DNA of 64,000 nt from Ylistrum balloti. Its lineage: Eukaryota. The position numbers and the translations under genes were made by a program. Shown one piece after another: positions 4,860 through 64,000 of the stretch (its first letter is position 1; each line of letters begins with the position of its first letter). Where the stretch lies: NCBI RefSeq assembly GCF_031769215.1, contig NW_026782078.1, positions 496,001 through 560,000 of the forward strand, given 5' to 3'. The notes under the pieces were generated by a model. That model was not told where the DNA came from. It did not search any database and was given only the letters and a program-made list of their open reading frames with translations.

Positions 4860-6413
4860 TTAGGATGTATACCTCCTAAAGGTCGCAAAATATTCCAAAA
4901 ATGAAGTGAATCTATAGAAAACTGAGACTGGAAGTAACACTGTACCTCCTAGCTTTAACACACCCTTTGAAAACTCCCCTTCTGTCAGTATTTGTGTGAT
5001 CGGATACTGGGATAAAAGAAAAGTGTCATTAACCCACAGAACAAAGTTGTTAATCGTTGTAAATATTAGTACAGACTCGAGAAGACTGAGTCTTGAATGA
5101 GGGTCAGACTTCTTACATCGATTAGCGTGCAAAAGAAATACTACCTGAAGATAGTCTTGGAAAATGCTCAGGATGTTAGTGTAGATAAGAGGTTTAGAGT
5201 TGTTATTTTCACCATGTATAACTTTGCAGATATGTATCATGAATAAACCAAAGACTGACGATAAATAAACATATTCCCGACCACGAAGTGAGTTCATTGG
5301 GATGTCAGGACTGCAGTAGTTGACTAAGCAGAAGAATCCGACAAAGTTCGCGATTAACATCAACACTTTCAAAATTAATTCATACCAATCGGCGATGTAA
5401 CGAAGGGTTGAAGTCTTTTCTGAATGCATTGCCATAGCAGCGTAGACCATGACAAATCCGAAGCCGGTTATCAGACTTACAGCTACAGTCATCATTTGAC
5501 TAAAGTTTCGTCTGTTCCCGTAATATAAAGGCTCAGTGGTTAACACATTGGACAGAAGAGGTGATCGCTCAGAACTTTCTGGTGTGTCCATGTCTGATAA
5601 GTTTGTTTCCTTACTTCGACCGCTCGACACAGAGGGTGACCATATTTCAACAATGACCGTGCTGGACAGAAGTATAAACTCTGTGAACATAGGAGTAAGA
5701 ATACTCTTAGAATTATCCATTAGAGTCTTCATTGTGCTGTTTCTTTGTAGACAAGAAGATGCGTTCATTTCAGGATGGATATCAATAAAAGTATCAAATG
5801 TATTCCCTATTATTGAGACAAATAACTGAATACATACATTTGCAGTTAAAAGCAGGAACATCGACCATTTAACCGATGTACAATGTTTCAATCTGAACGT
5901 TGAAAAGTATGTGACGAAAATCGTTTCCACGAGAAACATGATGACTAGTAAAGCATTGAAACAAATGATAGTGTACCAATAAAGTCCTTCAACATAGTGT
6001 AAGGAACATTCTATCAGCTTGCCGAGAAAGAGAGCTGAAAACAGACTCGCTCCAAGGCCGAAAATCCAGAGGAAAAACACCTGAAGTTTTGATGTATTTG
6101 TACTTCTAGCTCTAACAACATATGCGAGGCCACCCTTCTGTACTAAACACATAAATACAATGCAAACTGCTATAGCACCGGCCATGAGTGCCGACAGGGA
6201 AAGCAAAACAACTCCCAGCCGAGTATCTGCGCCTTCGTGTATGGTCTTGGTAGCGCTGAACACTATGATCAGTGCAAAGAAGCAGAGAAATAGAACACGG
6301 AACGAGATGCTACAGTCGTAATACCAGGACCCATTCCGCCGTCTTCGGTAATTTCCACTTGTCAAGGGTAAGATGACAATTGATGACAGCAGTTTCCCAC
6401 ACCAGGAATCCAT
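4860..6413 (-). CDS. OTOP: Otopetrin-like multi-pass membrane protein, copy 1 (intronless CDS, ~517 aa)
   Basis: Long ORF with ~12 hydrophobic segments. Otopetrin-type motifs: FLWIFGLGASLFSALFLG, LLTANVC, LTPMFTEF...EIW, QDYLQVVFL, INNFVLW, LLPVSVFYRFTS. ATG at 6413; splice acceptor (ttccag) at 6426-6427 just upstream indicates a 5'-UTR intron. The ORF-track start (6422) is a TTG. Confidence 0.88.
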   Translation of the reverse strand: MDSWCGKLLSSIVILPLTSGNYRRRRNGSWYYDCSISFRVLFLCFFALIIVFSATKTIHEGADTRLGVVLLSLSALMAGAIAVCIVFMCLVQKGGLAYVVRARSTNTSKLQVFFLWIFGLGASLFSALFLGKLIECSLHYVEGLYWYTIICFNALLVIMFLVETIFVTYFSTFRLKHCTSVKWSMFLLLTANVCIQLFVSIIGNTFDTFIDIHPEMNASSCLQRNSTMKTLMDNSKSILTPMFTEFILLSSTVIVEIWSPSVSSGRSKETNLSDMDTPESSERSPLLSNVLTTEPLYYGNRRNFSQMMTVAVSLITGFGFVMVYAAMAMHSEKTSTLRYIADWYELILKVLMLIANFVGFFCLVNYCSPDIPMNSLRGREYVYLSSVFGLFMIHICKVIHGENNNSKPLIYTNILSIFQDYLQVVFLLHANRCKKSDPHSRLSLLESVLIFTTINNFVLWVNDTFLLSQYPITQILTEGEFSKGVLKLGGTVLLPVSVFYRFTSFLEYFATFRRYTS

Positions 6414-7569
6414 TGTATACAAAACCTGGAATATAGGATAAACATTTTTGATGGATTATTTATCATTTCAGGATTTATTTTTTATATTGCTGTTTTATGG
6501 ACTGATGAAAGAAAGTGAAGTTTGTGCAAATGAAGTGAACCCCGCCAATTTCACAATTTTAAAGATCGCGCCATCCAAATGCACTTTCAGCTGACCCTGC
6601 AAAACAATGGAGTATCGCCTAAGATTGGCGGGAATGGTAGATTAATAACCACAAATACAGAGAGATTCCGCATAGTGGTAAAATTGTCGAGGAAAATGAA
6701 TGGAAATACTTGATTTACAGCATTTAATTGCTCTGGGAAACATGCAATGTAGTAGAAAAATCGTTTATCTTTCCAACGGTACATGATTTGTAATCTATAT
6801 AAAGCATTGCCTGAATGCCGACCCTTGCAAGGGTCTCTAGTGTTAGGGGTTTTTATACAGGGTGGAGTTCTGACTAACACCCTCTTCCTCAGTCGACTCT
6901 TAGGTTGTAAAGATTTTGAATTTGTATGTAAAGGTGCACTTTGCTTATTGGTTTTTTGCCCAATCGTATTAGAACTATTAGCAGAAATGTTGTCCTGAAA
7001 ATTCATTTTCAGATATATTGACAATGTCTTATAATCAGATACTAAGAATGACAAAACATCGGATATATTTCTACGCGTGTTAAAACCTTTTATTTACATC
7101 TTTGCTTACAACGAAACCAAAAAGGAGATTTTCACGCAGAGTATGATTAACCTGATGATATCATCTATGTATTGTGATTTTTTTTATCTTATCGCAAAGA
7201 AACGTTAGATCCAGAATGACAAATTCATAACGTAGCAATACTGAACCATTATAACATTACAAGAACAGCCGGCAAAGGATCCACAACATAAGATAAACTG
7301 TACACATACCAGTATAGTACCACCTGGACCTGTATCATTGGTGTAAGAAAATACATGATAAACAATGTTAAGATATAGATTACTGACAGGCTATGATGAT
7401 AGGCCGCTATAATAAAATTGCCACCGTTGGTAACTTTGATATGTAAACTTCGCCAGTGGTCGGACAAGGTATACTGTACACCTGTGATGGCCCATTTAAG
7501 GAATATCGTAGGTTTTATAACTGAACAAAAAGATCTAACCAAAATTGGGACAAAAAATGTTCAACATGT

Positions 7570-8930
7570 ACTTCAAACAAGTTTCTTTGTCAACAATCGA
7601 TATCTGGTTCAGATGAAGTAGTTTTCTTATCTTGTGTGATTTATGATAAGATAAAAAACATTTCTACTGCACTATGAAGATAAGAGAAGAAAATATGACC
7701 TTCTGCTTTGATTCAGGAAGAAATATTAACTTCCAGGAGGTAAAATACTTTTCTTACTATTTGTAATGTACACATTTCCCCCGTTCGTTCGGAAGTTTCC
7801 TGTTCAGATAAATTCACATAATCGCTTCGTTATTGATCACAAAGACCAGGGTGTGCAAATGATTACAAAGCTGTACAAAATACACACAAGTAATTAGCGC
7901 CGTTAAATACCAGACAATTAAGTTTACTGGTTCGATAGTAATGTCATGTTCCAAATAGAAAATAAAGTTAACAAGAGCGAGGCATACTAACGCACCGTAC
8001 ATGGAAATAGAGGTAACACCGGGAGTGGTTGAGGGGATATGGTATTTCTTTCACTCGAGAGTTACAAAACAAAGTAACGAACGTGAAAGTAATGACATAT
8101 AGTACAATCACGAGTTAGTGCGACCTGTTTCTACCACGATCAAAAACATTCTGTAGTTGAACTCACCTGTTCTATACCCCCGTGTGTTTTGTGTACATCA
8201 TGTGTTGATGTGACCTTTGATGAAATACCGCTACCTGATATGCAAAACTGACAATGCCAAACTGATATGGGGACTCATTACATGTAATAACTAGAAATTG
8301 TACAAAAGACAGAGTTAAATAAAATATAGTTAGATACAGTAGATCTACACAATGAATTGAACTACATCATACAGCTGTCTTTTCATTCTACGGCTCATCA
8401 GTCGTGCTAAAGACCTAAATTTTGGGGTCTGAGAGGCAACTGAGGAAAATCAAAGGAATCAACAGAAACGTCAAAATCTGAAAAGGGAGGTGCAGCAGCC
8501 CCATACTTAAATATAATTAGTAATTTTCCATGAATTATGATTAAGTATATATTACAACTAGCCAATGAAATCACAGGTTTAGTAACTTATCGAAATATAC
8601 CTTATCCTACCAAAAAAAGGAAGTTTCGACAAGGCAACATATGTTTTTTTCGACAATCGTTATCTGGTGCAACGGAACTATGTGCATTTTAGTCTTGTGT
8701 TATTCGTGAACAGATTAGAAACATTCCTACTTTAGTTAGGAGATAGCAGACACAAATACTACCTGTGATGGTTCAGGAAGGCATGTATACTTCTAGTCGG
8801 TAGAAATTACTTTGTTGTGTTAACAGTGTACAAACTTCCTCATTCGGAAGATTCCTCTCTAGCGTCTCAGGAACCGCGTTGTTTAATATGCTTTCACATT
8901 GTACACACTAGGGTGTACGTAAAATAACTA
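7570..8930. repeat. Old diverged direct duplication (~7570-7870 vs ~8630-8930) upstream of OTOP-like 1
   Basis: Collinear blocks: caacaatcgatatctggttc / cgacaatcgttatctggtgc; ttcaggaag...ttccaggaggtaaaatac / ttcaggaag...ttctagtcggtagaaattac; ttcggaagtttcc / ttcggaagattcc. Confidence 0.7.
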
Positions 8931-11900
8931 AATAACTACAAATATACAGTTCTTACTCATTATATAGTAGTGTACAGAAGAGATATATTTCAGCTTTATC
9001 AATGTATGTAGAACTTAAGCTATGTCAGTCTTATTAATACCACATACCTCATTAATTGATGTTTAAAATTCAGCGAGTAGCATGTCTTACGAAAGCAGCA
9101 TTAAACAAAGAGTTTTAATAGGCTTTTACAACAAACATCTTGCTTATCGTTCTTTCCGTGTGCCAATGACAGAAACAGGATGTGGACGATAGATGCTTCC
9201 GCGGAACAAAAGTCAGTTAACTGTTATGATCTCTTACAAGATTTTCCTTCTGGGATACCCAGCTTCTTAGAGGAACCAAACTTTCAGAATGACACAGATC
9301 TATACATTTGAAATAAACCATTTTTCCGTTACAAGAATGGAAGCGGACACGTATATTGTTTGGTATTGGTATTGTTTCAGTTGCTTTCCATGCAGAGAGA
9401 ATGAAGGACCAGAAATTAGCACTGCTTCGGAATCCTGCGTTTCTAATGATTGCCTCTGATTGATGGTGGTGGTTCCCTCTTGTCATTGTTTATTTTTACA
9501 GTTAATGTATTTTTATATACACAAATTTCTTATCTAATAGTTTTTACATCTACCGTCACAAAGATATATTGTATAACATCCGTCGATTTACGTTGTAAAC
9601 TGCCTATATTCAAATCAAGATGATTGGTTGTTATCTTAATACTGTATGCTTTATCTAGCCTTACAAACTATTCATGGTGGATCAGCATTATGAAAACGTT
9701 TTCCACACATCGCTATAGGGTATCGTTATATCATGACACTTATATTGATTATTTCTATCCGGAGACATCACTGAAAACCGGTGTAGACTATCGATAAGAC
9801 AAACAAACGCCACACTAAAAATGCTCAGATATTATACAGCTATATTGTAAATACACCTCTAGTTATAAAGTAATATTTACATAAAGTAAACTTGATAGAT
9901 TGGATATGTCAAGATACCTTAATGTGTTTTCACCTCATCAATGTTAAAAAAATATAAATCCTTCCTGTTAAATATAAACCTGAAATAATAAAATAGCTAT
10001 TCTTTATATGTTCGTTTCACACCTGCACACTTGTATTTGTTTTACTTAGCAACGTCTCATTCTGCAGTCTTCCATTACTAAAACACTTTAAGATCGACAT
10101 ATGGTCATTGATCAAATCAACCAGTTATCCTTTTTTATTCTATTTTGTTTTCTCTGATAAGTATTTTCAATGAGAATAACGTAATGTTTTCCTATAACAT
10201 TGTTTTACCTTTTCGTCTTTTATTTTGAATTTGAATTTGAATTTTATTAACTATTTGCCATTTTGTTACAGAAAACTTGAACGTTACTGTCGTAGAGAAA
10301 TCGCATACTGGAGCGGACATGCCAGAATATGATATAGTGATCCAGAAACTTGTCATGCCTATGAAAATATCAAAATAATTACAATTACCTTAACCACCAT
10401 TTCCGTTTTAAATCTGTCCAACGATCGAATAATTGAAAGAGCTACCAGGAGACCTTGAAATGTACAATGTTTTAAGCTGTAAACATCTTCTGATCAGTGA
10501 TATCCGACATGTTATTCATGTAAATCATGTGAAATTATCAAAATACAAGCCAGGTAAGTAACAACAAAACTATGAGATCATCTACAAAGTATTCAGCATA
10601 ACAAGATTCAAGATAAATCAGTCTGTTACCATCCCAGTTCTCTTGTTGCATGGTTTCCTTTAGATTTCGAAATTTATTGCCGAATTCATGATATCGGGAA
10701 CACATCATTAAAAATTAATCGACTTCACCATGTCAATATCATAGGTTGGGTAGCAGGAATGGAATTGACTAGAAATGGGTAATTTATTTATAAAAAACGA
10801 ACTATGGTTCTGCTGCTTTTATTTGAAAGTAAATATCAGGATAAACAACTGATACAAAAATAAAACTTTCCTTTTTCAATTCTTATTAAGATCGATGATA
10901 TGAAAATTGGAATATACCTACATTATTTACTTACCATCAATACATTTACATTATTTGCTCACCATCAATATGCCTACATTAATTACCTACCATCTATATA
11001 TTTCATTATTTTTCACAATATTTAATTTAATTAATGCTATTGATCAAATTTAAGGTAAATAAATGTAAATATCGCTCTTTTGTTGCCATAACTTATAAGC
11101 TTCTCATGATTATAGGATTTGAAAACTAATGATAAAACTAAAAGATACATGTAGTTAGTTAGCAATTTGTTACTATAAGATAATCACATATAAATTAATA
11201 TAACTGTATCCCTAGTAATATCAAAACTATATAAAACAAATAAATGAATAGATAAGCACAAATATATCATAGAAATATATCGTCAAATTTTTAACATAAC
11301 TTTAATATATAATTTCTAAATACAAATAAACATGCAGACATGTAAAAAAAGCATGTTCTTACCTGTAGAGTGTCTTTTATACAATCTTCAACAATTCCGG
11401 ATTTTAGATGTAAGGTAGTTGAATCACCGACACACAAAACAATTCTGGGGACATGTCGATAACAGGTTAGATTTTATAATCCGATAAACCCGGAAGTAAT
11501 ATGCGAGAGAGGGGCAAACTTTGGGAGGTTCCTGCTATCTAAAAGAATGTGAATTTCAAGATAAAATTGAATTAATGAACAAATTGATTGTTACATGTTC
11601 ATAAGATAAATTACATATGAAAGGGCATAATCCTTCTGTTACAGTTTATCTTGTCAATATGACGTCAATTTCTATAAAATGTTTCTGACTATCATGACAT
11701 TCGACTTTTTATTCTGTTTATTTTCGTATTAATCCAACTCAGTACACAAAAATAACTGCATACATGTATATCTTTTCATTTATTAAGTGAGACATCTTTT
11801 CAAGGATGAACAGATGGTTTAGAATATATGAAAATGTGTTATACTAAAGAACATTTGACGAAAATATAGCCACGACAAAGATAAAATACGAGAAAGAAAA

Positions 11901-16082: not shown

Positions 16083-19000
16083 CTACAATTTGTTCTGTTT
16101 TGAAAACTTACTTCTAACTCTGTATGCTATATGATGTGATTCCTGGAATACAAGGTCAGTTCTGTCTCTAACCCTATGTACCCAATCTTTGATCACGGGA
16201 TTCGATTCGTAAAGATCTTCCTCCCAACACGTGACCAGCTGCATCAACTCACAAACGCAAAGTAGATCGGCAACTGAAATCTCGTTCCCACACAAAAATG
16301 TCTTATTGTCCTTAAGAAAGAAAGAGGCCAGACTAGAAACAGCTTTCCGCACCTGGTTTCTTTCGTTCTCTACCAGGTGCCACTGTATTGGAGCTTTGTT
16401 GAGTATCGGCAATCTTATCTATAAAATACGTTAAAAATAATTAGTTAACTATGTTAGTATATGTAATGATCACAGTTTAGAAATAAGACCGTAACTGGGA
16501 AAGATAAGAAGTCAATAGGACATAAATCGCTTACTTCATTTTGTTCACTGAAGTGGCTTCATCTTATCTAAATAAAAACATTTAAATGATTTATATTTAT
16601 TTACCCCATTGTGACCCGCTCCTCCTGCTTCTATATTCAATGACGATTCAGACCAAATATGTACAAAATTCAATCCATGTCACAGGTGTAAGTACGATTT
16701 CAAAGAGTTGGCTCCATTTCCCCCTATTTTGACTTACCGCAACTCCCGCCCCAGGAGACCGTGAGCCAACAGTTTTACAACACTGAGTTACATTCACCCA
16801 AGAATGCAAATTTTGTTCATTATCCCCCAAGTATGCTTTTGAAAAAAATTGGTCGAAATCAGCTCAGTCGTTCATGATAACATGTAGTACAAATTCGTTG
16901 AAAAGTTGACGGATGGACGACGGACATTGCGGTATGTTATAAGATGGCTTTTTCCATCGAGCCAAGTGAGCTAAAACGTTTATTGGCATCGACGCTACAT
17001 GGTGGACATCCGTTCAGCAGGTATCAGTTTGAAATATAACATTATTATCCGATAAGTCACATGAACCAGCTTTTGATCCCCCAGGGTATAGGCTACGTTA
17101 GTGCATTGGAATTCATTTGAGAAAGATCAAATCGACCTCGCTAAAGGTCAGTACAAGCACGATTAAAATGATTAGGTAATGAATTTATAACACATACATC
17201 TCTGTCAAGATGCTTATCAACATTAATTAATACCTAAAAATCTAAGGTAGTAGTCATGGTGACACAGATATGTAAGTTCACGGTTAGGAAAGTCAATTGA
17301 AAGCAATGTCCCGTTTCTAGATAAAACACCACAACTACAACAGTTTTAATAAACTTTAAAAAAAAATGATATTCCAATGTTTCCTTATTGGTACCTCTCC
17401 TTACATAAATACTTACAAGTTCCCGAAATAATGAAGTACAACTGTATCTAGTGTTCAAGTGATGCCAGTTCATGGATTCGTCAACTCTGGCCTGCGCGTT
17501 GAGATCACTACGTGGATACCAGTGGTCAGACACATTGTATTTAATGGCAAGGTATTTCAGGATAGCAACACTATAATGAAACAAATGGTCAGTTCTGTTC
17601 AATATTAGAAGCTCGCAGTAGCAGTAAAGGAAAAATCTATATTGTCTATTAATAGAGATAATACGTTTTCTTGTCTGAAAAGAATAACGAATGTATCACA
17701 ACATTGTGATATGCTGACAAAATACATATCATTATCACGGTAGGCTACAAAAATACCTGACAAAATTGTGATTAACTACCAAAATACCTAACCTAACAAT
17801 ATTGATACAAATTCAACTAAAATTATCATGATGAGCTATAAAATGTCTAACATCTTCGCGACATGACTCAAACATTATCGTAATTGACTGTAATCACTTC
17901 TATGAACTAATACTAGCGAGTGTTTTGTATCCACTGTACATATCATTCGGATGAAGGAATATCATCAGATAAATAGTTACATTCTTCACGCTATACTCAC
18001 CTCTCTGTGAGTATGAATCCGTCATCATCTATAACAGGTACCTGACAGAGAGGGGTGATCTTTCGGAACCAGTCAGTGTAGTGTTCATCTGTAAAATTAC
18101 ATCATAAAAAATAAGACTATACAGAAAATTTTATTTGGCATTTCTGAGTTATCTTTAAGATTTTGCTTTCAGCATAACATGAAAGAGATATATCAGCTGA
18201 ATTTTTGAAGACATTAAACAACTTTAGAAATAATCAGTTTTATAATTGAATACGACTTCAGTCCTAATGGATACGTATTAGTTAAGAACGTTATCCACTG
18301 TTAAAGGGAATAAAAAAGGTATGGAGTATTACCTCCTGATTCCTAAATGAGACCAACAGTAAATTGGAACAAGTGAATGTTCTATTTCGATGAATTTGGA
18401 TAGTTAGACACATTGAGCTTTATCCCAATAGTAACCATGAAAAATATCTTGGATTTATGTTATGTTTTATTTTCTATAAATCTTAAAAATCTACCTTTGG
18501 CAATATACACTAACCATGATGTTTTCCCCGGCTGCAAAAGCATTTTTGACGCACAGCGCACATAACTTTTAGGTAACTAAATTTATCTATTGTGAATTTA
18601 AATCCTAACTTCGAAAGTTGATGCAGCTGTGCGCTGATACCGAAAAACTGAATATGCGTATGCTTTCAACCTTGAACTGTAGCACACACGTCAGTGGAAA
18701 TTTTATGGGGTCGCACGTTTCAACTCATCTACTTGTATCATTAGAATTTTTTTTTAATACACTTTTTGTTAATAAACTACTTCTAGTAGAGAGTGTTGTT
18801 GAACTTCATTATTCATATTCATACGCATTGCGGTAATTCCTGACCGAAATGCGTTCGATGAGTTACATAATAGTGCCAGTGACAAAAGAGTCCTACCTGA
18901 TAATGTTAGAGATATGATAAAATTTCATTTCAATTTTCAATGTAGATTTAGGATAAAAAATATACATTTCCTAGCTTAAATCAAGATAATTTTCCTGTAT

Positions 19001-20741: not shown

Positions 20742-20944
20742 NNNNNNNNNNNNNNNNNNNNNNNNNNNNNNNNNNNNNNNNNNNNNNNNNNNNNNNNNNN
20801 NNNNNNNNNNNNNNNNNNNNNNNNNNNNNNNNNNNNNNNNNNNNNNNNNNNNNNNNNNNNNNNNNNNNNNNNNNNNNNNNNNNNNNNNNNNNNNNNNNNN
20901 NNNNNNNNNNNNNNNNNNNNNNNNNNNNNNNNNNNNNNNNNNNN
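20742..20944. other. Assembly gap (203 N) in the spacer of the inverted duplication
   Basis: Run of N. Confidence 1.
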
Positions 20945-28400: not shown

Positions 28401-28827
28401 ATACAAGAGTTAGAATGAGAGTTGAATAACACCAACCTATTGTGGTAGAAACTATCATAATAAACGAATTACTTTGTATTAAATTTTACAGATGAGTTTG
28501 CCGATACTCAACAAAGCTCCAATACAGTGGCACCTTGTTGAGGAAGAAAGAAACCAGGTGCGGAAAGCTGTTTCTAGTCTGGCCTCTTACTTTCTTAAGG
28601 ACAATAAGCCATTCTTGTGCGGGAACGAGATTTCAGTTGCCGATCTACTTTGTGTTACTGAGATGATGCAGCTGGTCACGTGTTGGGAGGAAGATCTTTA
28701 CGAATCGAATCCCGTGATCAAAGATTGGGTACAGAGGGTTAGAGAGAGAACTGATCCTGTGTTCCAGGAATCACATCATATAGCATACAGAGTTAGAAAT
28801 AAATTTTCAAAACAGAACAAATTGTAG
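25449..28827 (+). pseudogene. GSTT1: GST theta copy C: exon 1 lost. Exons 2-4 intact at 26343-26430, 26872-27022, 28492-28827
   Basis: Homology to GST-B stops after ATG TTA C (25449-25455), so the catalytic-Ser exon is absent. Exon 2 has cis-Pro CCT>CTT (QVP>QVL) and exon 3 has an in-frame 3-nt deletion. Exons 2-4 keep open frames and splice sites. Could instead be a variant coding gene (see findings). Confidence 0.75.
27483..27860 (+). mobile_element. Non-autonomous MITE/HINE-like element in GST-C intron 3 (paralog of 16600-16976)
   Basis: ttttcgctcacctgactcgatggaaaaagcc...gcgtccgtcgtccgtccgtcaacttttcc is the reverse-complement homolog of the GST-B copy. Confidence 0.5.
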
Positions 28828-43282: not shown

Positions 43283-44914
43283 TCAACGGCAGTGTAAGAC
43301 ATGACGTGTACAATTTTTACTGTACATTTTAAAAGTTGCAAACAGCTCCAGTGCAGATGAAAACCTGAAGAAAATACTAGTTGGTAGGAGAACGTGATAG
43401 TAAAGGTTCATTACAATGTCTCCGAGGATTTGTTTTTCAACGTCTTTGAGAACTGAAAATTGTTCTACAATGAAACTATCACTCATCCATATGTTCAAGT
43501 TGATAACCATAAGGAATATCAGTACACAATCAAGAAGATGAACATTTGTTTGTATGTTAGATATTTTACACCTGTTAGCATGAAGCAGAAATACAACTTG
43601 TAAATAAATCTGTACTATTCCGAGAATGTATGTAATCAAGTTTAGTTGTGCGATAGGACCTTGTGTGTAATAAGCCGAGACAATCTCACACACGTGTATC
43701 ATGAGGATCCCTAATACAGACGACAGATACACATATTCACTAACTTTCAAGGGCTTATTTGCCCTGTCCGGCTTACAATAATGAACTAAACAGTAAAATC
43801 CGACAAAGTTTGCCACAATCATAGCGATAGTAATGATAGTATGATACCTTTCCATCATCATAAGTATCTCAGCATTTTTGGGAAACCATACACAAACTAA
43901 ATAAGAAACATCCAAACCTAAACCGATGACTACAGTCACAAAAAACGTGACGAGTTGCTGGATAGTCCGACCGGGTCTTGCACCAGAGGATCTGTCTTCG
44001 TTGTCAACAGAGATTTCCAAGAGCGTTGATCGGTCGTTTACAGAATAACTCAATCGATTAAGTTCCTGGTATGTCTGTACCTCCTCTTCAGAGCTGTTTT
44101 CTGTCGTAGTAGGAGACCACATCTCTAAAAGCATTGTGACAGATAGTAAGCAGAACTCTAAGAAACAAGGATTAGAAACTGTTTTGAATTTGTTGATAAT
44201 AGTTCCAAACGTACCGTTTTGAATACAGTATAGAATGTTACTACTGTTGCCGAACTGTTTCTCAAGGATATTGTCAGGGAAAAGCTCGTTGTCTATGATA
44301 ACACTATGTAGCCACACTGAAACATTGGCAGACAAAAGTATAAACAACACGTAACGAATGAAGGTAGAGTTTCTAAGGTTATACTGAACAAAATAACTGA
44401 TGAATATTATTTCAGTAAATAAAAATAGCATCGTTATTGAATTGAAAATCAATCTAGAATTCCAGAAAAATCTACCTCCATCTATGATGGAATTGTAAAC
44501 CTCACACACACTTTGCTGTCCTATTAGACTAATTGAAAGCAAGCCGGCCACTATTCCGAAAATCCAGAGGAATATTATCTGTAGCTTGGTGATGTTTCCC
44601 TCTCGCCTCTTCGACACTACCAATGCTAGACCATGCTTTTTGATGATGCAGCCGAGAGTAACACATGCAGCCACTCCCAAGACCATGATTGTCGTTAGTA
44701 ACAAGAACACTACCCCCATACGCTTTTCCTGGTCGTGATCAATATTCTTGCTGATCGTAAATATGATGATGACAGCAAGGAAGATGAGAAAGAAAACTGT
44801 AGACGATATAGTACCGTCGAAATACCTGGAACCATTTTGTCGCCTTTGGTAATTCCCAGCTGTGATCGGCAGAATTACTAATGCCGTGACCAGGTCTTTG
44901 CAAATATTCCCCAT
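43283..44914 (-). CDS. OTOP: Otopetrin-like protein, copy 2 (intronless CDS, ~543 aa)
   Basis: Same motif set as copy 1: FLWIFG, LLSANV, NPCFLEF...EMW, QIYLQVVFL, INLNIW, LLPTSIFFRFSS. ATG at 44914; acceptor ttccacag at 44944-45. Confidence 0.88.
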   Translation of the reverse strand: MGNICKDLVTALVILPITAGNYQRRQNGSRYFDGTISSTVFFLIFLAVIIIFTISKNIDHDQEKRMGVVFLLLTTIMVLGVAACVTLGCIIKKHGLALVVSKRREGNITKLQIIFLWIFGIVAGLLSISLIGQQSVCEVYNSIIDGGRFFWNSRLIFNSITMLFLFTEIIFISYFVQYNLRNSTFIRYVLFILLSANVSVWLHSVIIDNELFPDNILEKQFGNSSNILYCIQNGTFGTIINKFKTVSNPCFLEFCLLSVTMLLEMWSPTTTENSSEEEVQTYQELNRLSYSVNDRSTLLEISVDNEDRSSGARPGRTIQQLVTFFVTVVIGLGLDVSYLVCVWFPKNAEILMMMERYHTIITIAMIVANFVGFYCLVHYCKPDRANKPLKVSEYVYLSSVLGILMIHVCEIVSAYYTQGPIAQLNLITYILGIVQIYLQVVFLLHANRCKISNIQTNVHLLDCVLIFLMVINLNIWMSDSFIVEQFSVLKDVEKQILGDIVMNLYYHVLLPTSIFFRFSSALELFATFKMYSKNCTRHVLHCR

Positions 44915-47995: not shown

Positions 47996-48669
47996 TTATT
48001 TTTATGCGATATGAATCTGGGCGTGTTTGATGCTCAGTAGTTTGCATATTGGTTCCGTTGTTGTATACCTTGTTCTCATTTGACTGTAAAAGATTTAAAT
48101 GGCGGGCGTCGTCAATGAAGTAAAAGACGCTAACTCTTCCGAAACACATAGTCTTATTCTTCTTGTACTTTTTTCGGATTCTCCGTGTAAATTTTTCTTT
48201 TGTTCATATGTTTTCTTAGTAGGAAGGAATTTGAGTTTGGATAACAATCCTGTTGACATATTGGTTATTTCTTGTGTTGACAATACCACAGAGACATTGG
48301 GAAAGTCATAGATTTAGCTGCTTTCCTGAGTTGTGACATTTCTTTCCACCACAATTGACATTGTCAACTGATGAAGATCGGTACATGTACTGAATGACGG
48401 GTACTTAGTAGTTACTTTTACCTCTATGTGCACTACGATATTGTGAACTGCATCCTGATTTCATTCCGACCATTTGTGTTGATAAAACTGACTCTAGTTA
48501 TTTTATATCCGTGAGTGCCTTCCCTCTACTCCTTAACATTATGTCACAGTACACCAATTTAAAAAAATAATGTAAAAAGGTGTCAATCAATCTGCCGTAT
48601 TTTCTCCAATCCTTTACATCTTAGCTGGTCCACAAGAGGTCATAAACATGATAAAGTCTGTTTATATAG

Positions 48670-48908
48670 ATTGCACATACAATTACTGTCACTATATGAA
48701 GGACGATCCCTAATCGATTTCCTTCGTATGTTAATATTCATTTGCTGGAAGTGAATAGTATCACTATTATGGCGATAATCAAAAACAGGACACGGGACGG
48801 GATGCTACAGTCATAATGCCGCGATCCATTAGGTCCTCTCCGGACATGTCCGGCTGCAAATGGTAAAATAAAGATGGACGTAAACAGCTTGCCGAACAGT
48901 GAATCCAT
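48670..48908 (-). pseudogene. OTOP: Otopetrin-like pseudogene, 5' fragment (copy 5)
   Basis: MDSLFGKLFTSIFILPFAAGHVRRGPNGSRHYDCSIPSRVLFLIIAIIVILFTSSK*ILTYEGNRLGIVL. Clear homolog of the copy 3/4 N-terminus with an acceptor before the ATG, an in-frame TGA at 48740-48738, and loss of homology after ~80 codons. Confidence 0.88.
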
Positions 48909-52457: not shown

Positions 52458-54155
52458 CTAGGAGTTATACTTCCCAAAGGTTGCGTAGTATTCTAAAAAA
52501 GAAGTGAATCGAAAGAACACGGCTACGGACAATAAAAACCCATATACTTGATCCAATAATTCTTTAGAAAAATGAGCATTTTCTAATATGCGGGTACTTG
52601 GAAATTCAGCTATCAGGAAACTATAGGTAAACCAAAAAACTACATTCATGATCATTGTAAATATCAGGACCGATTCCAGTAAATCGACCTTGGATCGACC
52701 TTTCTGACAACGATTTGCCTGCAATAGAAAAACAACCTGTAGGTAATCCTGGAATAAACTTAGGATGCTTTTATAAAAAAAAATACTAGTGGCTGAATCG
52801 GGTAAAATATCACCGCCTAATATCTCGTAAAAATGAAACATAAAAACGCCGAATGCTGACAGCAAATAGACGTAATCGCATGGCCGTAGCGGTTTCGCTG
52901 TTTTATCAGGAACACAATCATTAATTAAACAAAAGAAACCAATAAAGAGCACAAGTGTCATTATAACTGTTAAAGCAAGCTCATACATTTCTGTGGCGTA
53001 ACGGATTTTGTCTAAATTTCCTATATCCATTGCCTGAGTGATATAACATATGACAAGTCCAAGTCCTGTTATTAAACTTCCAGCCAGTGTAAAAATATGT
53101 GATACCTTCTGTCTACTGCTATTGGCTTGTTGATTAACCTCGATTTCGGACATGGGACTACATGACTGGTATGGCATCTTACGTCTACCATCATTGTCTG
53201 GTTGATAGGTCCCGATTTCGGCCTGCCCGCTCCCGGGCTGTGTATCATCGCTAGAGGGAATGAGAGGTAACCGTTCGGAGTCAACTTGGTTAGTCTCATT
53301 TACCATAGTTGTGTGTTCGGAATCCCCCGGGTCATTGTCACGTGATTCGCTCTCAGAATGTGTCGACTGTATCGGTGACCATATTTCAAGAAGAATTGTA
53401 ATTGATAGAAGGGCATATTCAGCAAATGCTGGACCAAGAAAAAGACTTGATTTATGTAGAAGAACAATGATTGTACTGTTCCTTTCTATGCATGCTACGA
53501 GGTTATTATCAGCGCTGATTTTCTTAATCAGCTCAAATGTATCCCTCACGAAATATATGTACAGTATTACAGATATATTCGCTGTTAGAGCTAAAAACAT
53601 CACACAATTCACTGAAGTTGTCTGCCTCAGTTGAAAATGTGAAAAGTAGGAAAGAAAAACCATTTCAACGAATATCGAAAGAATTAACGTGACATTAAAA
53701 CAGAATAATATATTCCAAAAAAGATCTCCGTTAGTTTTTGAAAAACATTCCAGTTGCTTGGCGAGGAAAAAAGCACAATAAAATCCCGATGCTAAGCCGA
53801 AAACCCACAGAAATATCATCTGAAGCTTCATGGTGCTCGTATTTCTTCTGGCAGCAACCACAGAAAGGAGACCATGTCTCTGTACCGAAAATGCTAAGCT
53901 CAATATGCCTAACATTGTACAGACCATGATCACTGTCAGTAGAAACATAACCATCCCCCGTCGAATTCCTGCATGTGTTAATATATTAGGGCTGGAAGTG
54001 AAAACTAACACCGTTGTAGCGATGATCATCAGCAGGACACGGGACGAGATGCTACAGTCATGATACTGCTGTCCATTCCGTCGTCTCCGAACATGTCCGG
54101 CTGCAAACGGTAGAACGATAATTGACATAAACAGTTTACCACACGTGGAATCCAT
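52458..54155 (-). CDS. OTOP: Otopetrin-like protein, copy 3 (intronless CDS, 565 aa)
   Basis: Motifs FLWVFG, LALTANI, GPAFAEY...EIW, QDYLQVVFL, IMNVVFW, VFFRFTS. Acceptor at 54163-64. Confidence 0.9.
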   Translation of the reverse strand: MDSTCGKLFMSIIVLPFAAGHVRRRRNGQQYHDCSISSRVLLMIIATTVLVFTSSPNILTHAGIRRGMVMFLLTVIMVCTMLGILSLAFSVQRHGLLSVVAARRNTSTMKLQMIFLWVFGLASGFYCAFFLAKQLECFSKTNGDLFWNILFCFNVTLILSIFVEMVFLSYFSHFQLRQTTSVNCVMFLALTANISVILYIYFVRDTFELIKKISADNNLVACIERNSTIIVLLHKSSLFLGPAFAEYALLSITILLEIWSPIQSTHSESESRDNDPGDSEHTTMVNETNQVDSERLPLIPSSDDTQPGSGQAEIGTYQPDNDGRRKMPYQSCSPMSEIEVNQQANSSRQKVSHIFTLAGSLITGLGLVICYITQAMDIGNLDKIRYATEMYELALTVIMTLVLFIGFFCLINDCVPDKTAKPLRPCDYVYLLSAFGVFMFHFYEILGGDILPDSATSIFFYKSILSLFQDYLQVVFLLQANRCQKGRSKVDLLESVLIFTMIMNVVFWFTYSFLIAEFPSTRILENAHFSKELLDQVYGFLLSVAVFFRFTSFLEYYATFGKYNS

Positions 54156-55399: not shown

Positions 55400-55572
55400 C
55401 AGACCTGGAGTCCCGGAAGTGTAAGGGTCTCCTACGTCATTGTCGACACTTGTCATGCCAATTCTGATCAATACGAGTAACTAACGTCACGTTCCCAAAC
55501 GAACTCAATGTGACCAACAACGGAACAACCCCTGGCTTACTTGTCGGACGCTCAACCAATCGAGCTAAAGAG
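55400..55572 (-). mobile_element. tRNA-derived SINE remnant
   Basis: Minus strand ctctttagctcgattggttgagcgtccgacaagtaagccagggg gives an A-box/D-arm and an AGT anticodon-like arm (tRNA-Thr-like). The T-arm/B-box is degenerate, so this is not a functional tRNA. Confidence 0.45.
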
Positions 55573-56676
55573 AAAATTTCTCTAGACGAGTGGTATATTG
55601 CGGCTAGTATTTTACCAGGGTTACACTATTGAAGGAAACTGAAATCATAACACATATCATATAACTTATTGGGCAGCATGTCATATTTGATCTGTTGTAA
55701 GAAAAGATCGAGGTAAATGGCTGATTTAGATGAGTCCGTAGTATCGTTGATTTCAATTCTGTTGGTTAGAAACGATGGTCATAGTGATTATATTTCTTGT
55801 TTTTTAGGTAAGACGGCACCAATATATATAAAAATGAAATTGAAAACAAGTGAGACAAGGGAGGGGGCAGATGGTTTCCTTAGGTGTGCCAATAGTCTGT
55901 TAGAAAGTAACAAAGGGGCAACTTTTTTGAAATATGAAAATCATCAGCAAATGGTAAGCTTTTTTTTTAAAAAACCAAAAAAAAAAAAAAAAAAGAAAAA
56001 AAAAATTCGGCTTGGTTGATATAAAATAGAGCACCAGTCGTCCAAGCCATTATTAGTTTGTTGAAGAAATAAATTTTTGAAGTCTCACTAGGTACGATAT
56101 CTAGAGTAACGAAAATTTTCCATTGTCTTTGGAAATTGTGCACAACTAATTTTTTTTTCAACTTTAGAAAACGTACTTCTTAAAAGTCTATAACTGCACA
56201 AATAGTTGGGATCATCCTCTTTATAAACATAGAAGAATGTTTTCATAAGTGTTACCCTCGCCCTCCCCAGCCCCTCTTCCACTACCAAACAAATTGTTAT
56301 GGATACCTTACAATAAATGGCTGTTGACATTATATATAGTAACATCCTGTAAGTGTACATGTTATCTGGGTAATGATTAGATAGTAAATATTATAACTGG
56401 AGTAAGATCTGATACGTCATTATCACGACTAAAAACTTCCTGCTAATTTCTAACGCTGTATTATTCATATAAGGAAATGTCTGTGTCATGTTTCCGGATC
56501 ACGTTGAAATTGTTTAACCCAGGAAATACCGGGTCCTTAGGTTTGAAAATCGTTTATATATGAAGAGAAAAATGTCCGCGTTATATTGAAAAAGCTGTTT
56601 TCACCTATTTTCATCTTTTTTTTTTATAAAAGATGTCTCATAATTTAAAAAAAAATCTAGCTTCTGACATTTCCTT

Positions 56677-56960
56677 CTGGACCTTCATGGTTCTTCGGTA
56701 ACCTAACAAGACTTTAACTATTTTGACCTTCATGGTGCTTAGGTAACCTTACTAGACTCAAAACTAAAATGCCTTTATCCATCGAGACCTATGTGCTAAG
56801 GTAACCTAACAAGACTTTAACAATCTGGACCTTTCATGGCGCTTATGAAACCTGACGAAACTTTAATCATTTGGACCTTTCATAGTGCTTAGGTAACCTA
56901 ACAAGACGTTAACCATCGGGGCCTTGGTGCAGAAAACACCTTACCAAGGCCGTAACCATG
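56677..56960. repeat. Degenerate 45-46-bp minisatellite, ~6 copies
   Basis: Recurring ggaccttcatggtgcttaggtaacctaacaagactttaac; ggtaacct cores at 56697, 56742, 56800, (56846) and 56892. Confidence 0.85.
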
Positions 56961-57299
56961 TTGTTTGAACAACTGGATCCTGGTGATAGGCCAAAATTTG
57001 AACCAATGACAAATAAGATCAATTGTTCAAAAAAGGAAAGCGTATTTTTTCCTTCATCGGCTTCATTAGAATCTCGGTCAATCTACGTAAATATTGTTAC
57101 GATCCAAGATACTAATAAGACTTTACAATAAAAGGAAAAACCATGCCAACAAGCAACACTTTAGGACGATTAAAATGACGTCATCGAAAGTTGCCAGCAA
57201 TAAAAAAGACTTTATATAGCATAAGAGTGTTTTAATGTTGGAATTGAATTATGTAAATTTGCAAGTGTTAGTTCTGGAAGTGTACCAACAATTTTCACG

Positions 57300-60200
57300 C
57301 CAAATACCACACAAATATAACACCAAATACTACATAAAAATTGCACCAATTATCACACAATAATAACGTCACATATCACATAAATGTAACACCACATATC
57401 ACACCCATAGAACATCAAATATCACACAAATGTAACTCCAAATATCATTCAAAGGTAACACCACATATCACACAAATGTAACACCACATATTACATAAAT
57501 ATAACACCAAATATTACACAAATATCACACAAATATAACACCATATATCACACAAATATGACACCACATATCACACAAATATAACACCACATATCACACA
57601 AATGTAACACCACATATCACACAAATACAACACCGAATATCACACAAATATAACACCACATATCACACAAATGTAACATATCACACAAATATAACAGCAA
57701 ATATCACACAAATGTAACATCATATATCACACAAATGTAACATATCACACAAATATAACACCAAATACCACACAAATATTACACCAAATATCACACAAAT
57801 ATAACACCACATATCACACAAATGTAACACCACATATTACACAAATATAACACCACATATCACACAAATGTAACACCAAATATCACACAAATATTACACC
57901 ACATATCACACAAATATAACACCAAATATCACACAAATATTACACCACATATCACACAAATGTAACATCATATATCACACAAATGTAACACCACATATTA
58001 CACCAATATAAGAGCAAATATCACACAAATGTAACACCACATATCACATAAATGTAACATCACATATCACACAAATATAACACCAAATATCACACAAATA
58101 TTACACCACATATCACACAAATGTAACATCATATATCACACAAATGTAACACCACATATTACACCAATATAACAGCAAATATCACACAAATGTAACACCA
58201 CATATCACATAAATGTAACATCACATATCACACAAATATAACACCACATATCACACAAATGTAACACCACATATCACACAAATATAACACCACATATCAC
58301 ACAAATATGACACCACATATCACACAAATATTACATCAGATATCGCATTCATGTAACACCAAATACCACACAAATATAACACCAAATATCACACAAATAT
58401 TACACCAGATATCGCATTCATGTAACACCAAATACCACACAAATATAACACCAAATATCACACAAATATTACACCAAATATCACACAAATGTAACATCAC
58501 ATATCACCCAAATATAACACCAAATATCACACAAATATTACATCAGATATCGCATTCATGTAACACCAAATACCACACAAATATAACACCAAATATCACA
58601 CAAATATTACACCAGATATCGCATTCATGTAACACCAAATACCACACAAATATAACACCAAATATCACACAAATATTACACCAAATATCACACAAATATA
58701 ACACCACATATCACACAAATGTAACACCACATATTACACAAATATAACACCACATATCACACAAATGTAACACCAAATATCACACAAATATTACACCACA
58801 TATCACACAAATATAACACCAAATATCACACAAATATTACACCACATATCACACAAATGTAACATCATATATCACACAAATATAACACCACATATCACAC
58901 AAATATGACATATCACACAAATATAACACCAAATATCACACAAATATTACACCACATATCACACAAATGTAACATCATATATCACACAAATGTAACACCA
59001 CATATTACACCAATATAAGAGCAAATATCACACAAATGTAACACCACATATCACATAAATGTAACATCACATATCACACAAATATAACACTAAATATCAC
59101 ACAAATATAACACCACATATCACACAAATGTAACACTAAATATCACACAAATATAACACCAAATATCACACAAATATTACACCACATATCACACAAATGT
59201 AACATCATATATCACACAAATGTAACACCACATATTACACCAATATAAGAGCAAATATCACACAAATGTAACACCACATATCACATAAATATAACACCAC
59301 ATATCACACAAATATAACACCACATATCACACAAATGTAACACTAAATATCACACAAATATAACACCACATATCACACAAATATAACACCACATATCACA
59401 CAAATGTAACACTAAATATCACACAAATATAACACCAAATATCACACAAATATTACACCACATATCACACAAATGTAACATCATATATCACACAAATGTA
59501 ACACCACATATTACACCAATATAAGAGCAAATATCACACAAATGTAACACCACATATCACATAAATGTAACATCACATATCACACAAATATAACACTAAA
59601 TATCACACAAATATAACACCACATATCACACAAATGTAACACTAAATATCACACAAATGTAACACCACATATCACACAAATACAACACCGAATATCACAC
59701 AAATATAACACCACATATCACACAAATATAACACTAAATATCACACAAATGTAACACCACATATCACACAAATATAACACTAAATATCACACAAATGTAA
59801 CACCACATATCACACAAATACAACACCGAATATCACACAAATATAACACCACATATCACACAAATATAACACTAAATATCACACAAATGTAACACCACAT
59901 ATCACACAAATATAACACTAAATATCACACAAATGTAACACTAAATATCACACAAATGTAACACCAAATATCACACAAATATAACACCAAATATCACACA
60001 AATATAACACTAAATATCACACAAATATAACACCACATATCACACAAATACAACACCGAATATCACACAAATATAACACTAAATATCACACAAATATAAC
60101 ACTAAATATCACACAAATATAACACCACATATCACACAAATGTAACACCACATATCACACAAATATAACACCACATATCACACAAATGTAACACCACATA

Positions 60201-61872
60201 TCACACAAATGTAACATCACATATCACCCAAATACAACACCGAATATCACACAAATATAACACTAAATATCACACAAATATAACACTAAATATCACACAA
60301 ATATAACACCACATATCACACAAATACAACACCGAATATCACACAAATATAACACCACATATCACACAAATATAACACTAAATATCACACAAATGTAACA
60401 TCACATATCACCCAAATACAACACCGAATATCACACAAATATAACACTAAATATCACACAAATGTAACACTAAATATCACACAAATATAACACTAAATAT
60501 CACACAAATGTAACACCAAATATCACACAAATATAACACCACATATCACACAAATATAACACCAAATATCACACAAATATAACACCACATATCACACAAA
60601 TATAACATCAAATATCACACAAATATAACACCACATATCACACAAATATAACACCACATATCACACAAATATAACATCAAATATCACACAAATATAACAT
60701 CAAATATCACACAAATATAACACCAAATATCACACAAATATAACACCACATATCACACAAATATAACATCAAATATCACACAAATATAACATCAAATATC
60801 ACACAAATATAACACCAAATATCACACAAATATTACACCACATATCACACAAATATAACACTAAATATCACACAAATTTAACATCACATATCACACAAAT
60901 ATAACACCACATATCACACAAATATAACACTAAATATCACACAAATTTAACATCACATATCACATAAATGTAACATCACATATCACCCAAATATAACACC
61001 AAATATCACACAAATATTACATCAGATATCGCATTCATGTAACACCAAATACCTCACAAATATAACATCAAATATCACACAAATATAACACCATATATCA
61101 CACAAATATAACACCACATATCACACAAATATAACACCAAATATCACACAAATTTAACATCACATATCACATAAATGTAACATCACATATCACACAAATA
61201 TAACACCACATATCACACATATAACATCAAATATCACACAAATGTAACATCAAATATCACACAAATATAACACCACATATCACACAAATGTAACATTACA
61301 TATCACACAAATGTAACACCACATATCACACATATAACATCAAATATCACACAAATGTAACTCCAAATATCATTCAAAGGTAACACCACATATCACACAA
61401 ATGTAACACCACATATTACACCAATATAACACCACATATCACATAAATATAACATCAAATATCATACAAATGTAACATCAAATATCACACAAATGTAACA
61501 CCACATATCACATAAATATAACATCAAATATCATACAAATGTAACATCAAATATCACACAAATGTAACACCACATATTACACCAATATAACAGCAAATAT
61601 CACACAAATATAACACCACATATTACACCAATATAACAGCAAATATCACACAAATATAACACCACATATTACACCAATATAACAGCAAATATCACACAAA
61701 TATAACACCACATATTACACCAATATAACAGCAAATATCACACAAATGTAACACCACATGTTACACCAATATAACAGCAAATATCACACAAAGGTAACAC
61801 CACATATTACACCAATATAACACCAAATATCACAAATATTACACCAAATATCACACACATATAACACCAAAT
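57300..61872. repeat. 4.6-kb satellite, 23-bp monomer (atatcacacaaat[ag]taacacc[ac]), ~200 copies
   Basis: Continuous A/C-rich, nearly G-free array on the + strand, with variant blocks spaced at multiples of 23 bp. Confidence 0.99.
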
Positions 61873-62523
61873 AACTGAATGACATATTCGTTACTTCATT
61901 TTTAAAACTCAAAATGCAAGTTATATGTGGTGACAAAATTTCAAGAACATTAATGAACTGAAAAATAAACAACAAAAAAGCTGTAGGAAACATGTGGTAT
62001 ACATTGCTGTAGCTAAACATTGTTTTCGTAAGGCACAATATTTAATGATCTGTTTAATAATCATAGACACAGTAAAAAGATTTTTTTGTCTCGATTCGTA
62101 ATTAAATGGTAAACATATATATTTTATAATGATAATGGCGAGGAAAAGTAATGAAAAGGCAGAAGTAAAATGTACAATGTAAATAAATGTATATTGAAAA
62201 GCGAATACTAAACGAAGTAAAAGTATATCGAGTCTTTTTAGTCTCAAATATAATTTCTTTTTCTAAAGAACCTGTTACAAAAAGCTGTGAAAAAAATGTC
62301 ATTGGGAAACAAAAGACAATATACTGCCGAATTTGTCACCCGTCAACAGAAAAAATACAGTTAGAAATGTCGATAAAAGGGAGAGGGTAGTATGAAAGAT
62401 ATGTGCTGTTTCACAACAAAAATGTTGCTTTTAGGGAAAACTTGTTTTGGTGTTAAATCCTATGGCAGGGTTACATTATACATTTATGATTTTTCTATTA
62501 CGTATGATTATGTAAAGAATGGT

Positions 62524-64000
62524 CTACGTGGTAAGCTTGTTGAAGGTTGTATGGAATTCTATAAAAGATGTAAATCTGAAGAAGACAGACATCGGTAGAA
62601 ATATGTCATACAACAGAGAACTTATATCTTCTGGAAGTTCATCTTGTGTCATTATCCGGGTCCTTGGAAATTCAGATAACAGAAAACTGTCGTTTAACCA
62701 CAGGATAAAGTTACTGACCATGATAAAAATCAGAACTGATTCGAGCAAATTCAGGTTTGATCGAGGATCAAACTTCCTACATCGATTAGCACAGAGTAAA
62801 AAGACAACTTGAAGATAATCTTGAAACATACCAAAGGCGCTTCTATACAAATGTAGTGGCGCTAAGTAATCGGACGACATGTCACCGGCGATTCCTTCAG
62901 ATATATGAGTGATAAAAATTCCAAAAGCCGACAACAGATACACATATTCTCTAAGCTTCAAACCAGTTGGTGAACCATTGGGACAGCAGTAACTGATTAA
63001 ACAAAAGAATCCGGAAAAAAGAGCAAGCGTCATGATACATTTCAAAATAAGTTCATACATTCCGGCGACATATCTAACAATTTCGATGTTTCCTATATCC
63101 ACAGCCATGGTTACGTAACAAATAACCAGTCCAATTCCCGTCGTTAAACTTACTGCCAATGTTACCATCTGACACAATGTCCTTTTACTTCTGTTTTCGG
63201 AATGTGGAGGACTAGTGCTGGCGACATTATCAAGCAGTGGTATCGTCTCAACCGTGTCCATGTCACTACTCTCCACATATACAAGATCACTTGAATCACT
63301 TTCTGGATTGTGTTTCGTTATGGGCGACCATATTTCAAGAATGATCGTGCAGGACAGAAGAGAATATTCCACACACGTTTGGTTTAAAAGTTGTCTCGCG
63401 TTTGCCTTAAAAGATGTTATGGTGCTGTTGTTTTGTAAACAGGAAACAAATTGGTCTTCAGAGCTGATTTCTTTAAAATATGACAGAGTATTATGCATAA
63501 TGTAAATGTAGATAATAACAGATATATTTGCAGTTAAAAGCATAAACATTACATAATTCACCAAGAGAGTCTGTTTCAATTTGAATGACGAAAAGTACGT
63601 TATTAAAATCATCTCTGAGAATAAAGACAAAATCAATAGTAAATTGAAACAAAATAAAGCCCTCCAATAAAATCCATCTGTTGATGTAACAAAACACTCG
63701 ATCTGTTTGCCGACGAATAATGCACAATACAATCCAGATGCCAGGCCAAATCCCCAAAGGAAAATAACCTGAAGTTTTGTGGAACCGCCATTTCGTCTTG
63801 AAGTTACCACGGATTGAACACCATTCCTCTGTACGAAACAGCCAAGGACGTAAATGCCAGTCAACCCAGAGACCATTGATAAGGACAACAGTATAACGAC
63901 GATTCCTAATCGATCTTCCGCGTGCGTGTGTATTCCTTTGCTGGAGGTAAAGACTATCACAATGGCAAGAACGATCAGGAACAAAACACGCGATGTAATG
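62524..64000 (-). CDS. OTOP: Otopetrin-like protein, copy 4 (5'-partial; frame open to the window edge)
   Basis: Reads ...ITSRVLFLIVLAIV at the edge. Motifs FLWGFG, LLTANI, NQTCVEY...EIW, QDYLQVVFL, VSNFILW, LPMSVFFRFTS. About 40 N-terminal residues lie beyond 64000. Confidence 0.9.
   Translation of the reverse strand, partial: ITSRVLFLIVLAIVIVFTSSKGIHTHAEDRLGIVVILLSLSMVSGLTGIYVLGCFVQRNGVQSVVTSRRNGGSTKLQVIFLWGFGLASGLYCALFVGKQIECFVTSTDGFYWRALFCFNLLLILSLFSEMILITYFSSFKLKQTLLVNYVMFMLLTANISVIIYIYIMHNTLSYFKEISSEDQFVSCLQNNSTITSFKANARQLLNQTCVEYSLLSCTIILEIWSPITKHNPESDSSDLVYVESSDMDTVETIPLLDNVASTSPPHSENRSKRTLCQMVTLAVSLTTGIGLVICYVTMAVDIGNIEIVRYVAGMYELILKCIMTLALFSGFFCLISYCCPNGSPTGLKLREYVYLLSAFGIFITHISEGIAGDMSSDYLAPLHLYRSAFGMFQDYLQVVFLLCANRCRKFDPRSNLNLLESVLIFIMVSNFILWLNDSFLLSEFPRTRIMTQDELPEDISSLLYDIFLPMSVFFRFTSFIEFHTTFNKLTT

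Follow-up and report, generated by a model that had tools for sequence, protein, structure and literature searches.

Do some members of the otopetrin family work on intracellular membranes rather than at the cell surface? Work on otopetrins has treated them as proton channels of the plasma membrane, involved in sour taste, in the formation of otoconia and in the extrusion of acid, and the question extends to how pH is set inside the mineral-forming vesicles of calcifying animals. It is raised here by a 64,000-nucleotide stretch of the genome of the scallop Ylistrum balloti (assembly GCF_031769215.1, contig NW_026782078.1, positions 496,001 to 560,000 of the forward strand; hereafter the window), in which an initial annotation recognised four otopetrin-like genes, called c1 to c4 below, sharing an acidic dileucine motif and proposed as a candidate clade of organellar proton channels. 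The motif proves to be real, homologous between the copies, conserved beyond chance and placed in the linker between transmembrane helices 6 and 7 (TM6-TM7), and to this extent the organellar interpretation is supported; the idea that the motif marks this clade is not, and the description of the proteins as proton channels is an assumption. The family and the motif class were already known, and what is new is the combination of a bivalve-wide intronless expansion, a conserved ExxPLL motif in the inter-domain linker and the lack of the TM12 histidine in the scallop proteins. Our literature search found no paper linking otopetrins with a dileucine signal.

The four genes are long open reading frames (ORFs) on the minus strand, each of them uninterrupted, so that their coding parts are intronless. 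According to the ORF list and its translation, c1 occupies positions 4860..6413 (517 aa, coordinates including the stop codon), c2 positions 43283..44914 (543 aa, identical to the public database protein P0016), c3 positions 52458..54155 (565 aa) and c4 positions 62524..64000, the last being cut by the window end and completed from the species' own assembly (locus L003) to 528 aa, with a start ~105-110 bases past the window end. Translation of the minus strand gives the motifs at exactly the positions first reported for them, ERSPLL in c1 (5553..5570, residues 282-287), DRSTLL in c2 (44018..44035, residues 294-299), ERLPLI in c3 (53259..53276, residues 294-299) and ETIPLL in c4 (63232..63249). 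All four match [DE]xxxL[LI], and c1, c3 and c4 also match the strict ExxPLL form, with an LI ending in c3; c2, with -4 occupied by Asp and -1 by Thr, is the weakest fit. The location after TM6 is likewise confirmed as the TM6-TM7 linker in all four copies, and in each of them the motif lies 24-35 residues past the invariant Trp that closes TM6, in a linker of 48 to 94 aa (48 aa in c1, at 5496..5639 of the minus strand, predicted to be disordered and cytosolic; 94 aa in c3). The acidic and Ser residues said to precede each motif are most evident in c1, c3 and c4; in c2 they are less clear. The loop had also been called otherwise unalignable, which agrees with the 11-23% identity found among the four loops when the motif is excluded (36-52% for the remainder of the proteins), but not with the SDMDT that c1 and c4 have in common upstream of the motif.

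By shuffling (20,000 shuffles), the chance that one of these loops contains [DE]xxxL[LI] was estimated at 1.7-6.5%. As the four genes are paralogues, their loops are not independent trials, and an alignment of scallop homologues and a family-wide count are the stronger tests. Other matches to the pattern, such as EYVYLL in TM9, were set aside as membrane-embedded or unconserved. An upstream Y-x-E-[IL], a YxxPhi candidate at columns 359-362 of the scallop alignment, ~20 residues before the motif, occurs in many scallop paralogues but within the window only in c2 (YQEL), and was not kept as a shared feature.

The closest public homologues all belong to the Pectinidae (Argopecten, Mizuhopecten, Pecten and Ylistrum), and two further ORFs of the genome, outside the window, match RefSeq proteins of Y. 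balloti with 100% identity, in agreement with the species assignment. In an alignment of 22 scallop sequences the motif is kept in 20, its columns falling in the same places: all 22 sequences have the first Leu, 21 have the acidic residue and 20 have the Leu or Ile. The entropies of these columns (0.7 bits for E/D, 0.0 for L and 0.7 for L/I, against 2-3.3 bits for the neighbouring loop columns) make them the sole conserved island of the loop, and the two exceptions are sister Mizuhopecten genes, one of which is truncated. In the maximum-likelihood tree the four window copies fall into four separate, well-supported orthogroups, each shared with other scallop genera (Mizuhopecten or Argopecten); the duplications are therefore older than the split of those genera, and to judge from these sequences the motif has been retained independently in each line while the remaining loop diverged to the low identity given above. 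Within the genome of Y. balloti itself, 14 of the 15 full-length paralogues carry the strict motif and the fifteenth reads QRTPLL, and a canonical-type otopetrin fragment found in the same genome (WKNIGR...VDCS) is without it. A second cluster of the same genome (contig C607 of G000) contains seven close paralogues (L001, L002, L004-L007 and L010), all motif-bearing, of which L005-L007 are nearly identical with a spacing of ~9.5 kb and L001 and L002 form a pair 5.7 kb apart.

Beyond the scallops, we compared the scallop profile with 1.84 billion cluster representatives and obtained 574 relatives, the best 150 of which were examined, their TM6-TM7 loops being located by profile mapping and the expected counts derived from shuffles. 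The motif [DE]xxxL[LI] is present in 59 of the 124 non-scallop representative loops, whereas shuffling predicts 7.8, and over 200,000 simulations the number of motif-bearing loops never rose above 21; for [DE]xxPL[LIVMF] the count is 36 of 124 against 0.83 expected. Control loops of the same proteins contain the pattern once among 133 (TM5-6) and three times among 130 (TM11-12). Conservation beyond chance among mollusc homologues, which the initial annotation had proposed as a check, is thus found both in the scallop alignment and in the wider set.

Taxon names were recovered by 30 cluster look-ups, and the taxonomy of motif carriers covers these named representatives only. With the exception of one hemichordate, every named carrier is a pteriomorph bivalve (scallops, Tegillarca, Ostrea, Crassostrea and several Mytilus), and the insect representatives, among the clusters of the best 150 that were named, are without the motif. 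The hemichordate carrier (Ptychodera) was read as a chance case, having two matches in a loop of 180 aa, whereas not one match is found in P0094, a relative from Saccoglossus with 46% identity. Word-index protein searches gave five proteins with a profile of the distant hits and two with the Ptychodera query. The occurrence of the motif across bivalve families and in the paralogues of the same genome indicates that it is old and widespread and not peculiar to the cluster in the window; rather than marking this expanded clade, it occurs in roughly one of every two members of a far larger otopetrin-like group, of which the named ones come from scallops, oysters, mussels and an ark clam.

What kind of motif is this? 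Signals of the form [DE]xxxL[LI] are read by the large-subunit/sigma hemicomplexes of the adaptor protein (AP) complexes AP-1, AP-2 and AP-3 (PMC2173715), and a narrower form, ExxPLL, is common to OCA2, tyrosinase and TYRP1 (PMC3418312). Mutagenesis of OCA2 has shown that a change of Glu to Asp at -4 removes AP-3 binding, that AP-1 requires Pro at -1 where AP-3 tolerates Ser or Ala, that Gly at -2 or Asp at -1 abolishes binding and that the distance from the membrane is irrelevant (PMC3418312). In the 84 motifs collected, Glu is found at -4 in 79, Pro at -1 in 42, followed in frequency by Ser or Ala, and Thr or Ser at -2 in 48; the residues that are non-permissive in OCA2 are nearly absent, Gly occurring once at -2 and Asp never at -1. 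The family consensus is (acidic/Ser)-E-x-[T/S]-P-L-L, near-variants ending in V, M or F (TPLV, TPLM, TPLF) being conserved in the family too. At the level of sequence, the bivalve consensus E-x-[TS]-P-L-L matches the restricted signal, ExxPLL, that cargo of melanosomes and lysosomes carries. Like LL1 of OCA2, EKQPLL of tyrosinase, DERAPLI of LIMP-2 and ETERLL of mucolipin-1, the scallop motif conforms to [DE]xxxL[LI], has acidic or Ser residues upstream and is predicted to lie in an unstructured cytosolic setting, and most copies resemble cargo of the OCA2 and tyrosinase type in having the restricted form (Glu at -4, Pro at -1). They differ from the lysosomal and melanosomal cargo in that the motif lies in an internal linker between the two halves of the protein and not in a terminal tail.

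The adaptors could only read such a motif from the cytosol, and the fold and topology of the proteins are therefore of importance. The Pfam Otopetrin domain PF03189 (gathering cut-off 27.8 bits) is recognised in c1 (E 2.3e-16, 60.2 bits), c2 (E 1.8e-18, 67.1 bits) and c4 (E 1e-15, 58.0 bits). The whole c3 protein gives no PF03189 match and its C-terminal half alone scores 29.7 bits, the full-length protein being missed because of its 94-residue linker; over its full length c3 is 40-46% identical to c1 and c4. An AlphaFold2 model of c1 has 12 long helices, with a predicted local distance difference test score (pLDDT) of 76 and a predicted template-modelling score (pTM) of 0.73. The linker is unstructured in this model (pLDDT <50 at residues 260-297), a predicted disorder of the kind expected of a short linear motif. 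In a structural comparison (VIA) all 12 solved otopetrin entries rank first, with Z of 17-22 over 308-373 aligned residues and at most 11 for the next family. Foldseek gives an E of 2e-6 with a TM-score of at most 0.43 and a global root-mean-square deviation of ~15 A, and the predicted model is not to be trusted on how its two barrels are placed with respect to each other.

Among solved structures the profile of the clade matches OTOP3 and OTOP1, and the helix that precedes the motif aligns to TM6 of chicken OTOP3 and zebrafish OTOP1. This helix contains, four residues after a Pro, Glu245 of c1 (5679..5681, minus strand), the same Glu being encoded at 44156-44158 in c2, 53418-53420 in c3 and 63367-63369 in c4. 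The Glu is invariant in the scallop alignment and the Pro nearly so; c1, c2 and c3 have the pair, and c4 has Gln for Pro and keeps the Glu. The TM6 Pro-x-x-x-Glu has been described in mOTOP2 and CeOTOP8, where the Glu carries protons (PMC11343839). In common with vertebrate OTOP1-3 and C. elegans OTOP8, the window proteins thus have the Pfam domain, a predicted 12-TM double-barrel fold, the TM6 Pro-x-x-x-Glu, an acidic residue in TM9 and, in TM12, a Pro and the F-[FY]-R of the 'FYR box'. By contrast with canonical otopetrins, their clade is intronless, has at least 15 full-length copies in the genome and carries the long ExxPLL-bearing linker.

Otopetrins have 12 TM helices, and both termini were found to be cytosolic by a protease-protection assay (PMC6483595). 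If the topology of the solved otopetrins holds, the TM6-TM7 linker would accordingly be cytosolic, as homology suggests, and two sequence features agree with this placement: an N-x-T sequon is invariant in the preceding TM5-6 loop of the scallop alignment, and c1 has 16 Lys and Arg in the 119 residues predicted to lie on the inner side, against 3 in the 60 of the other side.

The proton-channel label is a different matter. In the 'FYR box' of TM12, which reads FYRFTS in c1 (4902..4919, minus strand), a Thr codon (4905-4907) occupies the position of the canonical proton-acceptor His, and the corresponding codons, also on the minus strand, encode Ser in c2 (43358-43360) and Thr in c3 (52503-52505) and c4 (62569-62571). 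Profile alignment to 6nf6 and 6nf4 sets the Thr of the clade opposite the His of RMHSV. This His has been called absolutely conserved and described as the proton acceptor, its change to Ala or Gln abolishing the currents of XtOTOP3 and zebrafish OTOP1 (PMC11343839); c1 to c4, unlike these two channels, have Thr or Ser in its place. The initial annotation had assumed the proton-channel function, and judged by the TM12 residue the four sequences would not be assigned it. The substitution is a property of the closest clade as a whole, where every representative scoring >240 bits has T, S or A in this column, and the His is present in 50 more distant representatives (both among the best 150 of the 574 relatives). 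The Glu of TM6, the acidic residue of TM9 and the remainder of the 'FYR box' have been retained in the same closest clade. Since 21 of the motif-bearing relatives have the TM12 His and the others do not, the motif is not tied to the loss of this residue. In other bivalve subclades the residue at this position is K, E, Q or N, and one of them reads FYHFEC, with a His two residues earlier.

How might the motif act? Exposed in the linker, it would be bound by the large-subunit/sigma hemicomplexes of AP-1 and AP-3, and of AP-2 at the surface; the otopetrin-like proteins would then be sorted at the trans-Golgi network or at endosomes, or retrieved from the plasma membrane, and would reach endosomal, lysosomal or lysosome-related vesicles, possibly calcifying ones, and not the cell surface. 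That the motif is an adaptor-binding signal that sends or retrieves the proteins to vesicles of these kinds is the reading we favour, with about an even chance of being right. A more ambitious version of it, which we hold to be doubtful, would have the whole pteriomorph intronless radiation dedicated to intracellular membranes, with ExxPLL acting through AP-1 and AP-3 to reach lysosome-related or calcifying vesicles and with the scallop branch using another proton relay or performing another ion or pH task. Several points weigh against the adaptor signal. The DRSTLL of c2 would, by the mammalian code, bind AP-3 and AP-1 poorly, and this code is itself derived from mammalian adaptors; about half of the wider family is without the strict motif; classical dileucine signals lie mostly in N- or C-terminal tails, those in internal loops being known but rarer (PMC5297682). 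The topology is assigned by homology at ~15% identity, with a model that superposes poorly on the solved structures. A short motif conserved in a disordered loop could also serve another partner, and a dileucine signal names no destination, as endocytosis, basolateral sorting and lysosomal delivery all use one.

One alternative keeps the adaptor and changes the address: the motif would belong to a plasma-membrane channel and serve endocytosis through AP-2 or sorting of the polarised, AP-1B type, so that it would tune the amount of channel at the surface or let the channel be carried passively into endocytic, seawater-derived vesicles, without any organelle-resident clade. We consider this unlikely, although the sea-urchin protein Otop2l has a plasma-membrane location and, in its authors' proposal, gets into vesicles through endocytosis (PMC13000164), EEHSLL of mucolipin-1 is an AP-2 internalisation signal (PMC5297682), and c2 has at -4 the Asp that removed AP-3 binding in OCA2; the consensus, with Glu at -4 and Pro at -1, has the form that OCA2 needs for AP-3 and AP-1, and AP-2 alone would not require this stricter form. 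A motif unrelated to adaptors seems to us similarly improbable. It might dock a regulatory or scaffolding partner, or be an intramolecular plug that gates the protein from its cytosolic face, in the manner of the N-terminal loop of CeOTOP8, a short cytosolic loop that silences the channel through the contact of one Trp (PMC11343839). The Ser, Thr and acidic residues that flank the motif might form phosphorylation sites, and the variants ending in V, M or F suit a hydrophobic docking motif as well as they suit a dileucine signal; a plug or a docked segment is not what AlphaFold2 predicts, however, the segment having neither structure nor contact in the model (pLDDT <50), and at each of -4, -2, -1 and +1 the residue preferences follow the adaptor code. 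We know of no alternative ligand for the E-x-x-P-L-L pattern, which we count as a further point against this explanation.

The two remaining explanations would deprive the motif of any sorting role. A linker that is luminal or outside the cell, owing to a different topology of this divergent clade, would be out of reach of adaptors, and the ~15% identity to solved otopetrins, the poor superposition of the whole model and an N-x-S sequon inside the c1 loop itself can be cited in its favour; we regard it as very unlikely, as the twelve helices of the model are ordered as in the solved structures, the landmarks P-x-x-x-E of TM6 and P...F.R of TM12 are conserved, the TM5-6 loop, on the opposite side, has the invariant N-x-T sequon and the Lys and Arg residues favour the predicted inner side. 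Hardly credible, finally, is a motif without function, due to chance or to mere common descent of the paralogues: the pattern is short, is met again in TM9 (EYVYLL) where no signal is possible and has a per-loop chance of ~2-7%, but its persistence in separate orthogroups while the loops decayed to 11-23% identity contradicts this explanation, as do the 59 carriers among 124 distant representatives (7.8 expected, 0 of 200,000 simulations above 21) and the nearly empty control loops.

For the reading as an adaptor-binding signal that leads to intracellular vesicles, one of the closest known systems is Otop2l of the sea urchin, a H+ channel found at the plasma membrane and on calcifying vesicles, for which the 2026 study names no sorting signal (PMC13000164). 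The initial annotation had described characterised otopetrins as studied mainly as plasma-membrane proton channels, a statement to be qualified, since Otop2l is a precedent for an otopetrin on vesicles (PMC13000164). Both cases concern invertebrate otopetrins of calcifying animals; Otop2l has its vesicle location by experiment and is a proven H+ channel, whereas the scallop proteins are putative in both respects. If the reading is correct, the main shell-building molluscs would possess a family of intracellular otopetrins, and on the more ambitious version these would be the first organelle-resident ones and would offer a direct handle on the control of vesicle pH in shell formation; a motif that is conserved in bivalves and matches the code for lysosome and melanosome sorting is a simple and testable entry point. 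The clade without the TM12 His also tests how universal the Glu/His relay is in the otopetrin family.

Returning to the window, c1 to c4 are tandemly arranged, intact and intronless members of the bivalve-expanded otopetrin branch. The c1 ORF is also intact in a genomic contig from a second individual, with 8 single-nucleotide polymorphisms in 1551 bases (4 synonymous and 4 conservative, none of them in the motif) and no insertions or deletions. The flanks of c1 (window positions 3000-8500 compared with run X1) have more differences than the ORF and several insertions or deletions, including a 26-base deletion at 3983. We had considered the sequencing run that holds c1 as evidence of transcription and rejected it, because its 6.2-kb contig covers the gene and both flanks and is thus genomic DNA. 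In the public protein collection only c2 has an identical entry, the best matches of c1, c3 and c4 being 62%, 60% and 79% identical, so that the public gene set of the species may lack all three of these intact ORFs.

An otopetrin N-terminal fragment of ~80 codons at 48669..48908 of the minus strand (L016), 60% identical to c3 and containing an in-frame TGA, is a pseudogene relic between c2 and c3. Between c3 and c4, positions 57300-61873 are occupied by a 4.6-kb minisatellite in which a 23-bp unit is repeated ~199 times (85% match) with an extreme C-over-G skew; the ORFs and Pfam matches inside it are low-complexity artefacts. An assembly gap at 20742..20944 lies in AT-rich non-coding DNA between exons of glutathione S-transferase (GST) genes, at a distance of >14 kb from c1 and of >22 kb from c2. 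It has no otopetrin-like sequence on either side and is not crossed by any reading frame of c1 to c4, and it leaves unproven only that c1 is joined to c2-c4 on one scaffold, the motif finding being unaffected. Two listed ORFs that span the gap are artefacts in which N was translated as X. The GST exons (GST_N and GST_C) are found on both strands, at ~900-1036 (+), 16083-16412 (-) and 28492-28827 (+), that is, before c1 and between c1 and c2, and the otopetrin cluster is consequently interleaved with GST genes.

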